This document shows, piece by piece, positions 1,209-5,600 of a DNA stretch of 64,000 nt. The stretch covers positions 3,410,001 to 3,474,000 of the forward strand of contig OU015566.1 in assembly GCA_907165135.1 (NCBI GenBank), read 5' to 3'. A program made the position numbers and the translations under genes. The notes below the pieces were generated by a model, which saw only the letters and a program-made list of their open reading frames with translations, ran no database searches and was not told the DNA's origin. Origin of the DNA: Oikopleura dioica (taxonomy: Eukaryota > Animalia > Chordata). The stretch's first letter is position 1; each line of letters starts with the position of its first letter.

Positions 1209-4200
1209 ATGATAAGAAAACGACTAATTGTTTTGCTCCCTTTTCTCGCAGCTCTTCCCGATAGAAACTGTACTGATTGCATCACCTTCCTTGACGAAAA
1301 TGATATAAAACCAACACAAGCAAGCACGACAATGACAGTTGATGAAAACGAGCAAGTAACCCAATCATAAAAAATATCTAAAAAATTCGTTAAATTTCAA
1401 GAACGATTTCAATATTCTTGTCCTAATGAACAACTTAACAAATTCATACATTATCTCTGGTGACGGCTCAACAATCACTTCGCCAACAATAAAAGGACTT
1501 CTTGAGTATCCTACAACATCTTATGACTACGTTGCTAATTCTCCATATGCGTTATTAAAGGATCAGTTATATATTTTTGGTGGAAGCAGATATGGAGATC
1601 AGCGAAAAGTGTCTTTAAAAATTGTATTAATGTTACAAAAAAAATATAGATCAGAGGTGGATATTTTGAAATCAACCATAATTCCATTTTTTCTATAGCA
1701 AATTTGGCTTGATGAATCGGCTTGAATTTTCGCATGTTATCATCTTTTATATACAATCGGAGTCCAAAATAAGGGACTTTTTTTGCTCAAAATTTTTCGA
1801 AAAAAGTCCCTTAAATTGGGTCATCAAACCAAAAAATATGTCGCAAGCAAATTTTTTCGAAGTATATTTTTTGCGTCAAAATAAGCTAAAAGCATTGTTT
1901 TTGTGTCTTTAAAGACATTTTATAAAGAGGAAAACATATTCTGAACGGCAAATCACTTCAGTTTGTCGCAAAACTGATTGTAATCAAGGCTATTATTACC
2001 CTTTATCAGCTCTCAACTGACTGAAAAAGCTAACTTATCTCAGACAGCCCCTTAAATTGGATTTTTTTCTGCCGCTGATTTTCGGCATTTTGAGTCAAAA
2101 AGTCCCTTATCTTGGTGTCCCTTATTTTTACTCAGACTGTACTCGAATCAATTCTGAAAATCTCAGACTGATTTATTAAGCCAGTTTTGCGCTGAAAAAA
2201 ATGGAATAATGATTTGATTTCAAATTATCCACCCCTGCTATAGATAGCAAAATTATTCGGTTGTCGATTTAGTCAATTGGGAACTCGATTGAATTATCCA
2301 TATGATGGAAGAGCTGCCGCTCTAGCGATTGAAAATAACACTCAAGGTTAGACGAAATTTATACGTTCTAGTTTAAGATTGATATTTTAGCGCTTATTTG
2401 TTTTGACAGTTACAAATGGAATTTAAGATGTGAGATTTTCGATACAGTCAATGTTAAAACGACGCACTCTGTTAAATACCTAGGCATAACGCACAAAAAA
2501 TCGACTTTTTATCTGAACGTCGCAGGAAGCTGATTTTCAGATATGATATAGACTTTTGTGCTCGGATAACATTACAAATAAAAAAAATTTCAAAATTTTC
2601 AAATTTAGTACTTTTTAAGTACCCCAAAGTTGTCAAAAAATTGATTTTTCGAGCAATCCAAGCTACGGGGTTGTAAGTATGCTCATTTGAAAGAGCGCAA
2701 AAAACTGAGTAAGAAACTTCAATAAAAAGGGGTGCATTGGGGGTTCTCTGGATTCTAGGGATGAAAAACTCGGAATCTGATGAGTCATCACTTATTTCAA
2801 AAATCGGCCTTTTTCAAAAATAACATGATTTTTTTGAAACTTATAGGTTTGGCATAAAAGATGTCCAGGATTCCGATCACGTGATCAAAAATTTTGAAAA
2901 AGTTCATCTTGGGGTCACTCGAGGTCATCAAAGTTCAAAAATTTGATTTTTGAAAAAAATACCGTATTTACCTGAAACTTATTGGTTCAACATAAAAAAT
3001 GTCGAGGATTCCGATCACATGATCGAAAATTTTTAAAAAGTTCATCTTGGGGTCATTCAAGGTCATAAAAGTTCAATTTTTAATTTTTTGAACTTTTCGG
3101 AAAAATCATGACTAACGTAAAATTTATGCGTTCCACGTTAAAAAAGTGGACATTTTTTATCTAGTCACACGAAAGTTCAAATTGAGGTCATCTAAGGTCA
3201 CTGTAGTTCAAGAACTCACAAATTTGAAGAACAAAAAATTAAAAAATCCTTTTCTCTAAATTAAGTCTTTGAGACGGCGCCTTGTATTCTGCAAGCACGC
3301 ATTTTTAACGCTTCTTGAACGCCGGTTACTTCACTTGCCGATCGCATTGGCTTTTTTCGAAATGAGATCTTTGTTTTTACTATTTTTTTCGACATTTTAT
3401 ACAATCAGTCATTCGACTGATTTTTGTGTGCTAACTGTAGAGAGTGTGAAGAAGATTCTTATTGCGAATGGTGTCACAACTGAAGATGAATGGAACGAAA
3501 ATGTTTCTCTTTACAAGCAAGGATACAAACAAAGATGGCGAGATTATATCAAATGCTCATCCTACTATCGATCGAAAGGGAGTTCGAAGATCAACAATTA
3601 CCTTCATAAGTAAAAAATGAACTCGTCATTTTTAAATACCTAATTTTTCAGTGGAATTTTCGATCCGTCTAAACGACACCTCTTGTTTCCACCTGAAGTT
3701 CTTGATATCGCTGATTTTCCAAAACGTTCTTCGCAGCCATGGTCCGGCTCGATGAAGATGGTGCTTTTCGCTCCCATGATGAGTTTCATCGCATGTACCG
3801 TGTGGCTGTCGTCTGGCTCGCGCAAACATGGATGGAAGTTTTTGACAGTGACAACAATGAGTTTATTTCCTGGAACGAATTGGATATGGCTTTGCAAGAA
3901 GTGAAAAGACGGCGAGAAAAATTCGGTGCTGCACTGGAGAGTAAAGAAGTTCAGTATTTCTTCTCAAAATGGAAACCATCGGTCTGGAACACATTGAAGT
4001 AAATATAAAAAAATATATTTAAGACAATTCATGGTCTCGACATTGACGACCTGGTTGTATTTACTTCAGAAGCCTGGAATTATTACATTGAGAATCTTCG
4101 CCCGCCGACAAACCAACGAAATTTTGCGTGATTTTGTGTGCTAGAATAATTCTTCTCTGACTTATCAAAATTATCTTTTTCTAATATATTTCAAAATTTT

Positions 4201-5600
4201 GAAACCAAAAAGCCTTGTTCACCTTAAATGACCTTGAATGACCTCTATTTGAACTTTTTTATGTGACTAAATGAAAATGTCAATTTTTTAGCGTGGAACC
4301 AATAAATTTCACGTAAGTCTAGATTTGTCATAAAAGTTCGAAAAATTAATAATTGAACTTTTGTGACCTTGAATGACCCCGAGATGAACTTTGTGAGAAT
4401 TTTTGATCACGTGATCGGAATCCTCGACATTTTTTATGTTGAACCAATAAGTTTCAGGACAATACAGTATTTTTTCAAAAATCAAATTTTTGAACTTTGA
4501 TGACCTCGAATGACCTCAAAATGAACTTTTTCAGAATTTTCGATCACGTGATCGGATTCCTCGTCATCTTTAATGCCATACCTGTAAGTTTTAAGGAAAT
4601 CAAGTTATTTTTGAAAAATGCCGATTTTTGGAATCAGTGATGACTCATCGAATTCCGAGTTTTTCATCCCTAGAATCCAGAGAACCCCCAATGCACCCCT
4701 TTTTATTGATGTTTCTTACTCAGTTTTTTGCGCTCTTTCGAATGAGCATACTTACAACCCCGTAGCTTGGATTGCTCAAAAAGTAGCGAGAAAAGGGATG
4801 AAAATAGTACTAAAAAGTACCAAAATTTTTTTTCCAAAAAATTTTGAAAAGTCGTTTTGGGTACTCTTGCTGCTCCCAAAGTTTCAAATTGATATCTCTT
4901 ACAGGGAAAAAGTTGATTTTTTTGTACGTTATGCCTATAAATACCAACATGTTTATGGCAAGCTTGGATACTATGAGGGAAAACCAACAGCAATCGGTGG
5001 TTTGAATTCGAAAATGAATATTGAAAGCTGGACAAAAAATGGCTGGATAACAAAAGGCCACTTTAGCCAAGTTTATGGAACAATTTACGGGCACTCTTTG
5101 ATAGGACTTGAAAGCGGTTCACTTTTCCTGTTTGGTGGAGCTACAAGAAAATTCAATGAAGACACATACTTGAAATCTGTCTACAAAATTGAGGACAATC
5201 AATTGATAGAAATTGGAAATTTGGCAAAGGTACTTTTTAATTAAACTTTTTCTTTTGGGCAAGAGGTAGGCCGTAAGATGCATTTACCGACAAGATATTC
5301 TCCTCGCGATTAAAATATAACTTACGTTTAGTACTTTTTCTCGGCTCTTCAATCAGAAATGGGCATTTTGTCTACCTCGTTCCGGGAAAAAGCCCTGGGT
5401 TTTCACTTCAACGAATCAAAATCAACGAAAGTGAGGTGATAGATGCAGCTATTATCGGCCACCATTCGTATGAGAATGCGATTCCTGTTTTATTTTCAAC
5501 AGATTCAGATTACTGTGTCAAGGATCCTTCGATTTCAAATGCCTCTTATGAAACATTCTCCCTGTTTATCTTCATAATCTTATTTATAAATTACATTTAA
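1209..5600 (+). CDS. Kelch-like beta-propeller protein with signal peptide and GPI-like C-terminus; interrupted by a transposon at 2481-4937
   Basis: Manual exons about 1209-1355, 1402-1607, 2244-2348, 2390-2480, 4946-5229 and ~5332-5600. Kelch-type motifs LYIFGG, KLGYYEGKPTAIGG and LFLFGG; ends SNASYETFSLFIFIILFINYI*. Removing the insertion and one TSD copy restores ...HSVKYQHVYGKLG in frame. Confidence 0.7.
1754..2140. mobile_element. MITE with TA target-site duplication (Tc1/mariner-like), intronic
   Basis: Imperfect TIRs: CAATCGGAGTCCAAAATAAGGGAC versus the reverse complement of the right end, CAGTCTGAGTAAAAAATAAGGGAC. TA flanks both sides (1752-53, 2141-42). Confidence 0.6.
2481..4937. 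mobile_element. Non-autonomous long-TIR (foldback-like) DNA transposon with 8-bp TSD and a cargo gene
   Basis: TSD TAAATACC at 2473-2480 and 4938-4945. Termini TAGGCATAACG(C/T)ACAAAAAA. Inverted arms of about 700 bp (2481-~3200 and ~4225-4937) with internal ~125-bp tandem subrepeats. No transposase. Confidence 0.9.
3362..4131 (+). CDS. Secreted EF-hand-containing protein carried as transposon cargo; has a frameshift or error at ~3715
   Basis: Signal-like MRSLFLLFFSTFYTISHS; GT-AG intron 3610-3651; canonical EF loop DSDNNEFISWNE. One extra T is needed in the T-run 3715-3718 to join the frames. The 3' splicing is uncertain. Confidence 0.6.

Follow-up and report, generated by a model that had tools for sequence, protein, structure and literature searches.

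Internally deleted derivatives of hAT transposons, of the Ac/Ds type, form at short microhomologies, sometimes with filler DNA; hAT termini carry the motif YARNG, and the target pattern of Ac is nTnnnnAn. For Buster hAT elements the target pattern is nnnTAnnn (PMC3517528). Animal Pack-type elements with terminal inverted repeats (TIRs), the Pack-TIR elements, are mostly hAT-borne and carry small, often chimeric gene fragments, for which an origin by template switching has been proposed (PMC8277862). Here we analyse a stretch of 64,000 nucleotides of the Oikopleura dioica genome (the window; C4:3410001-3474000 of assembly OKI2018_I69, 64.28 Mb in 19 contigs), in which an earlier note, made from the sequence alone, had seen a Pack-type foldback transposon moving an intron-containing, calcium-binding EF-hand gene. 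The published Okinawan assembly is described as 64.3 Mb, built from Nanopore and Illumina reads of one male, with haplotypes merged (PMC8008620). We found that window positions 2481-4937 (~2.5 kb) are a transposon interrupting a kelch-like gene within an open coding exon. This copy of a divergent hAT-like transposon has decayed, and it does not serve to carry a functioning calcium-binding gene. The explanation we consider likely is that it is a recently transposed, non-autonomous hAT-like copy in which a 491-bp EF-hand gene fragment has taken the place of the rest of its own transposase gene, and which would be mobile only in trans.

Two long arms enclose a core made of two pieces with different histories: 3261-3737, which is shared with other copies of the element, and 3738-4228, which is unique. 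The shared piece, 477 bp at the beginning of the internal region, holds the start of a putative transposase-type gene (gene G), and we refer to the unique piece as segment X. Two other copies recur below, one on contig C5 (the chr2 copy; chr1 and chr2 are O. dioica chromosomes) and one on C3 (the C3 copy). The features, with target-site duplication abbreviated TSD, open reading frame ORF and untranslated region UTR, are:

2391..2480, forward strand: 5' part of the interrupted exon of the host kelch-like gene, after a 44-nt intron at 2347-2390
2473..2480, no strand: left TSD copy, exact 8-mer TAAATACC
2481..2500, forward strand: left TIR, 20 nt, starting TAGGCATAAC
2481..3214, forward strand: left arm, a 165-nt unique tip followed by the inverted-repeat part 2646-3214 with 138-nt subrepeats
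3215..3361, forward strand: putative upstream region or 5' UTR of gene G, common to the chr2 and C3 copies
3362..3610, forward strand: exon 1 of gene G, encoding a hydrophobic N-terminus and a conserved Cys-containing N-domain; same exon in CAG5114203.1
3611..3651, forward strand: intron 1 of gene G, 41 nt, GT..AG; the public model of the chr2 copy is spliced here in the same way
3652..3737, forward strand: first 86 nt of exon 2 of gene G; identity with the chr2 copy stops at 3737
3738..4228, forward strand: segment X, unique in the genome, apparently from the 3' side of an EF-hand gene; ORF 3739-3998, then a GT..AG intron of 71 nt (3999-4069), a short terminal exon and the 3' UTR
4215..4937, reverse strand: right arm, the inverted-repeat part 4215-4782 with 137-nt subrepeats followed by a 155-nt unique tip
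4918..4937, reverse strand: right TIR, 20 nt, with a single mismatch to the left TIR
4938..4945, no strand: right TSD copy, exact 8-mer TAAATACC, identical to the left copy
4946..5241, forward strand: 3' part of the interrupted host exon, open frame with a weak Kelch_4 match

The exact 8-bp TSD claimed in the earlier note is there, and the two TIRs pair at 19/20 positions (95% complementary). Three inverted-repeat pairs lie in the arms: 2646-2958 with 4470-4782 (313 nt, 93%), 2938-3148 with 4281-4491 (86%), and 3172-3214 with 4215-4257. The inverted arms and tandem subrepeats had thus been described correctly, but the arms pair over ~570 nt and not over the ~700 bp given, because their outer 165 nt (left) and 155 nt (right) are unrelated except at the TIR. 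The subrepeats are two units of 138 nt on the left (2796-3071) and two of 137 nt on the right (4337-4610), and each arm has a partial third unit. Every unit carries one 12-bp palindrome, GATCACGTGATC, with an E-box core (window positions 2875, 3013, 4405 and 4542). All four sites of this palindrome in the 64-kb window fall within the arms, against 0.08 expected, and it is a candidate protein-binding site.

When the element and one TSD copy are removed, a single frame stays open from the acceptor at 2390/2391, across 2480 and on into 4946-5241, and the host's upstream exon (2244-2346) and 44-nt intron are consistent with the same reading frame. The insertion is truly exonic, as the earlier note had it. 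Kelch_4 matches the downstream part of the exon weakly (E 0.002), and that part has 57 matches in the genome; the host gene therefore belongs to a large kelch-like family. Continued into the element, the frame of the host meets a stop after ~17 codons, and the insertion, as assembled, would truncate the host gene.

The family has at least 15 copies in O. dioica OKI2018_I69; the left 780 nt of the element gave 48 genome matches and the exact left TIR 20-mer 30 occurrences. We counted TSDs in fetched loci, comprising 14 TIR pairs 280-2965 bp apart and the C3 copy. A perfect 8-bp TSD flanks 12 of the 14 pairs, the C3 duplication agrees at 7/8 positions, and the consensus nnnATnnn (AT at positions 4-5) holds in 13/13 duplications. 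Most of the short copies have a left-type end on both sides, and the window's right end is common to only five copies. A TIR variant starting TAGGG differs at 3/20 positions and occurs as pairs 2.8-4.7 kb apart.

Two copies are informative about movement. The chr2 copy (C5:15210185-15213149) is 99% identical to the window over 2481-3737 and divergent beyond, where 1574 bp of different sequence follow and no more than the final 143 bp of the right end remain. The copy is flanked by a separate TSD, GAGATAAG, and is nested in another foldback repeat, further copies of which are uninterrupted and serve as paralogous empty sites. The C3 copy joins window position 3392 to 4736 across the 6-bp microhomology TTTCGA and is an internal-deletion derivative; a small duplication, palindromic in form, is seen at its left tip. 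The element has transposed recently, and the identity of the chr2 copy, its separate TSD and the empty sites uphold the proposal that this is a TIR element of the non-autonomous kind, with hAT-type features and an 8-bp TSD, that is mobile as a unit. The foldback repeat hosting the chr2 copy (C5:15208000-15217000) belongs to a ~310-bp palindromic family of at least 30 copies. A 220-bp fragment from a different copy of that family lies inside the chr2 element, and the family position at which it ends is also that of the outer insertion; this coincidence may point to a preferred target or to a shared history of rearrangement.

Searched against the genome, 3261-4200 matched three places only: the window, C5:15211896-15212371 (bases 1-477, 100%) and C3:602456-602583 (bases 1-128). 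The search for a donor locus and for further copies of the supposed cargo, suggested in the earlier note, went against a travelling gene: segment X had no second copy, and the 5' half recurs in two further element copies. CAG5114203.1 (Oidioi.mRNA.OKI2018_I69.chr2.g8267) is identical to the protein encoded by the chr2 copy, in which gene G runs on in frame through further exons, and diverged paralogs of its exons occur at at least five loci in the O. dioica genome. Protein-level searches with the window copy were made exon by exon, each exon separately, and Pfam gave no match for any gene G exon. A profile of exon 3 and its O. dioica paralogs found 15 proteins among 1.84 billion protein cluster representatives. 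Several of these relatives have, in order, an LTL..DG/DES strand, I(M/L)SD(S/T)...Q...N.LL, a CxxH block and F.TD.GSRY, an order that we take to be the hAT transposase layout. A further, C-terminal motif, VES.F..K, occurs only in a 531-aa relative; its likeness to the C-terminal block of hAT is one judged by eye only.

We modelled this 531-aa relative with AlphaFold2 (AF2) from the family alignment. The overall predicted local distance difference test score (pLDDT) was 51.6, with residues 110-240 confident and arranged as beta-beta-beta-alpha-alpha-beta-alpha. In a Foldseek search of the PDB, the Hermes hAT transposase took places 1-11 (E 5e-6 to 3e-5), followed by ISCth4 and P-element transposases. 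VIA-align also ranked Hermes first (Z 7.9, root-mean-square deviation 3.5, 125 residues, model 102-245 on Hermes 133-265), above retroviral integrase cores, and the Atlas gave DUF659, ZBED-type and Dimer_Tnp_hAT clusters (0.76-0.77) as leads only. Gene G is thus probably a divergent hAT-like transposase-type gene, as the model suggests. The exon that had been read as the signal-peptide exon of a cargo is exon 1 of this gene and would belong to the element itself, given the same exon in CAG5114203.1, the profile relatives and the model match to Hermes. The statement that the element has no transposase holds for an intact one, but the 5' half of the core appears to be a transposase-gene remnant.

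In the annotated protein of the chr2 copy, Gly stands at the place of the first catalytic Asp. A 58-nt GA..AG intron, of a type common in O. dioica, would give TLAL-DGTVTNR at this point, matching the family. After the second Asp the gene is broken by a tiny palindromic repeat and the 220-bp foldback fragment described above. We found no intact enzyme of the gene G family in the assembly. TIR 20-mer pairs 2.8-4.7 kb apart contained no transposase, and one held a nested Penelope-like reverse transcriptase. This last locus (C4:8244900-8249800) is bounded by the TIR variant TAGGGTAAACGCAC and encloses an ORF of 831 aa, in which reverse-transcriptase motifs and GIY-YIG-like ones are seen; Penelope-like elements are described as almost absent from the Okinawan assembly (PMC8008620). 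The seven loci of the genome with PF05699, the hAT dimerisation domain, were without the element's TIRs, and no TIRs were seen on the metagenome contig of a 551-aa relative. Directly downstream of one canonical hAT dimerisation-domain ORF lies a tandem array of 30-bp period with CCAAT in every unit (C5:13847990-13848450). A 31%-identical paralog of gene G that has the D, D, CxxH and GSRY motifs is present in two 99.3%-identical copies, in stretches of >3.3 kb (C1:1355239-1358523 and C5:10822762-10826049); its gene is more complete, and it is a candidate autonomous relative.

Segment X (491 bp) adjoins the right arm directly, with a trailer of ~100 nt after its last exon. ORF 3739-3998 contains two EF-hand-like loops, whose Pfam EF-hand matches (E ~8e-4, 19-20 bits) lie below the cut-offs of 25-30 bits. 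Over 78 residues it is 27% identical (pairwise E 7e-7) to a chr1 ORF in which Pfam recognises a bona fide EF-hand pair. Because this alignment begins at residue 19 of the chr1 ORF, inside its first loop, and an intron, a last exon and a trailer follow, segment X appears to come from an unprocessed EF-hand gene, of which it keeps the 3' part and has lost 5' sequence; an intact ORF with a start, scoring above the Pfam threshold, is not present. Segment X has no second DNA copy in the genome and no donor locus in the assembly, and occurs in the window copy only. Word-index searches of public proteins returned nothing for the EF-hand ORF, for exon 3 of gene G or for the ORF of exon 1. We considered whether segment X could be the C-terminus of the transposase, which was ruled out (hhalign probability 0.3% against the transposase profile). 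An EF-hand-like loop in an alternative frame of exon 1 (ORF 3462-3620) proved spurious, having no Pfam match, and a paralog match fixes the other frame. The region C4:260573-263758 contains an exon (C4:262073) that is distantly paralogous to the one for the transposase N-domain, and ~450 bp downstream of it, on the same strand, lies an ORF of 149 aa that includes an EF-hand loop. This EF-hand ORF has no detectable similarity to segment X, though the order is the same as in the window copy, which may be coincidence or a recurring association.

The two pieces of the core do not make one gene. When exon 1 (3362-3610) is spliced via the intron at 3611-3651, the exon-2 frame reads ...KRSSQ and stops at 3902-3904, and the EF-hand ORF lies in a different frame. 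We enumerated all G[N]-AG introns that could connect the EF-hand frame with exon 1 or with exon 2 and found only weak, non-consensus sites. A single-gene model, with signal peptide and EF-hand, was rejected for the locus as assembled, since no canonical or convincing non-canonical intron joins the frames. The pieces being out of frame, no signal-peptide-plus-EF-hand protein is encoded as assembled. The earlier note's spliced ORF with a signal peptide and a canonical EF-hand loop is therefore not borne out, as no single ORF holds both, and what it took for a genomic calcium-binding gene in transit is better described as the start of a transposase gene fused out of frame to an EF-hand fragment. 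What survives of the proposed gene capture is that 3738-4228, and only that part, looks like captured host-type DNA, which is out of frame, without a donor locus and present in one copy.

We propose the following origin. The ancestor would have been a longer element encoding its own intron-containing transposase. The window copy would have retained both long arms, with the TIRs and the subterminal 138-nt repeats that are probably bound by the enzyme, and, from the internal region, the initial 477 bp, which comprise the upstream region together with exon 1, intron 1 and the opening part of exon 2, and the remainder of the transposase gene would have been replaced by the 491-bp EF-hand gene piece. 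Replacement most likely occurred via template switching or microhomology-mediated repair after a break. The sister C3 copy shows a deletion across a 6-bp microhomology, and reliance of O. dioica on microhomology-mediated end joining has been reported (PMC11067885). A hAT-like enzyme recognising the TIRs and the palindrome-bearing subterminal units may then have mobilised the copy in trans, and it would have landed in the coding exon of one kelch-like family member with an 8-bp duplication.

The most serious competitor, although unlikely, is that segment X was already native to the 3' region of a lost autonomous element, as an accessory EF-hand gene, and that the window copy arose by one internal deletion. 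Such a deletion would be more parsimonious than a double template switch, segment X directly adjoins the right arm, and the C4:262073 paralog shows the same sequence of N-domain and EF-hand ORF. However, segment X starts mid-exon, at residue 19 of the chr1 EF-hand ORF, which fits a fragment better than a gene; it is not detectably similar to the EF-hand ORF at C4:262073; and no second copy of the element contains it. That a Pack-type vehicle captured, and now spreads, a complete and functional intron-containing gene for a secreted EF-hand protein is very improbable. The hydrophobic N-terminus, the clean GT..AG introns and the EF-hand-like pair do all lie on one strand inside the element, the exon-1 paralog at C4:262073 also has an EF-hand ORF nearby, and animal Pack-TIR elements are on record, including hAT-borne ones and one foldback-borne gene (PMC8277862). 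Nevertheless, the exon-2 frame stops at 3902-3904 and the EF-hand ORF is in another frame; the 5' half is common to transposase-type genes, whereas the EF-hand half occurs in the window copy only; and the word search found no public protein of the expected size with either part. Two independent MITEs (miniature inverted-repeat transposable elements) flanking a resident gene can practically be dismissed. Many short family copies exist, but a single 8-bp TSD surrounds the whole unit and the host frame closes across it, as the earlier note had already argued, and the same arm-to-gene junction recurs at two further loci with different TSDs.

Several points weigh against the decayed hAT-like copy with a replaced gene end that we favour. 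Pfam, PDB-sequence and profile comparisons gave no sequence-level tie of the gene G family to hAT; PF05699 had no Pfam match in the 531-aa relative, and hhalign against the genome's own PF05699 ORF gave a probability of 0.2%. Because these sequence-level links failed, we call the family only "hAT-like". The structural evidence is limited, coming from a model of a relative with a low pLDDT (51.6) and a middling Z (7.9). The hydrophobic N-terminus would be odd for a nuclear enzyme, and the target consensus nnnATnnn is unlike both described hAT patterns. No intact autonomous copy of the element family was found in the assembly, and "own transposase" rests on position in three copies and on homology. 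Segment X has no source locus in the assembly, so its capture from a host gene can only be presumed. Lastly, a 1-nt assembly error at the junction, which is conceivable, would undercut the out-of-frame claim. Going beyond the favoured origin, we can only tentatively suggest, at less than even chances, that the element represents an undescribed, very divergent hAT-related lineage, blank in Pfam, with ~15 relatives, a hydrophobic N-domain and an nnnATnnn target, apparently confined to larvaceans and marine metagenomes, very recently active in Okinawan O. dioica, and shuffling gene fragments by microhomology-mediated repair. Less likely still, the frame offset at the junction would be an assembly error and the element would have built a new secreted EF-hand gene.

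We also asked how the host gene could be read across the insertion. Since no TSD offset yields G[N]..AG, precise, intron-like removal of the element without a scar is impossible. In-frame cryptic splice pairs are arithmetically possible in 181 combinations, for example GTGAGA (2430) paired with TTTCTTACTCAG, which ends at 4723. In the host's reading frame no stop occurs in the final 320 nt of the element (shuffle p ~8.5e-4), which gives a 107-codon open frame from the right arm into the host exon (window 4618-5244). This would make in-frame exonisation of that end possible; the stop-free end is not retained in other copies, and the open frame is probably due to chance. The preceding intron of the same gene (1609-2243, 635 nt) consists almost entirely of another foldback repeat (1644-2245; arms 1644-1730 and 2158-2245), whose tip provides the AG acceptor at 2242-2243. 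This intron looks transposon-made or transposon-remodelled.

These results correct the attractive reading of a ferried calcium-binding gene. In its place they reveal very recent DNA-transposon activity in a tiny, gene-dense genome, with copies 99-100% identical and one of them in a coding exon. The copies are also concrete cases of internal deletion and of gene-fragment incorporation, relevant to the origins of rearrangements in O. dioica. In Oikopleura, 44% of repeats are unclassified (PMC8008620). Because this hAT-like family escapes standard domain models, Oikopleura repeat annotation probably misses it.

Compared with known systems, the element resembles non-autonomous hAT elements of the Ac/Ds type in its 8-bp TSD, its short TIRs starting TAG, its long subterminal repeats and its internal-deletion derivatives, as in the C3 copy at TTTCGA. 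Its tip, TAGGC, agrees with YARNG at 4/5 positions, and the TAGGG sister variant agrees fully. An RNase H-like DDE (Asp-Asp-Glu) core with CxxH, as in Hermes, is indicated by the motifs of the relatives and by the model of one relative, of low overall pLDDT, to which Hermes is closest. In contrast to known hAT elements, its transposase family is invisible to Pfam, PF05699 included, its arms form a ~570-nt foldback, and its N-domain begins like a signal peptide. Its target, nnnATnnn in 13/13 TSDs, matches neither nnnTAnnn of Buster nor nTnnnnAn of Ac. Like Pack-TIR elements such as Pack-hAT-N8_XT and Ssk-FB4 (PMC8277862), it is a non-autonomous TIR element with a TSD and holds a host-type gene fragment, intron included. 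Unlike them, it occurs with this fragment in one copy only, half of the supposed cargo would be its own gene, and segment X, whose best protein relative is 27% identical, is without the parental host locus in the assembly on which the published definition relies (PMC8277862). Judged from its sequence, then, the Pack-type idea holds for the fragment X alone.

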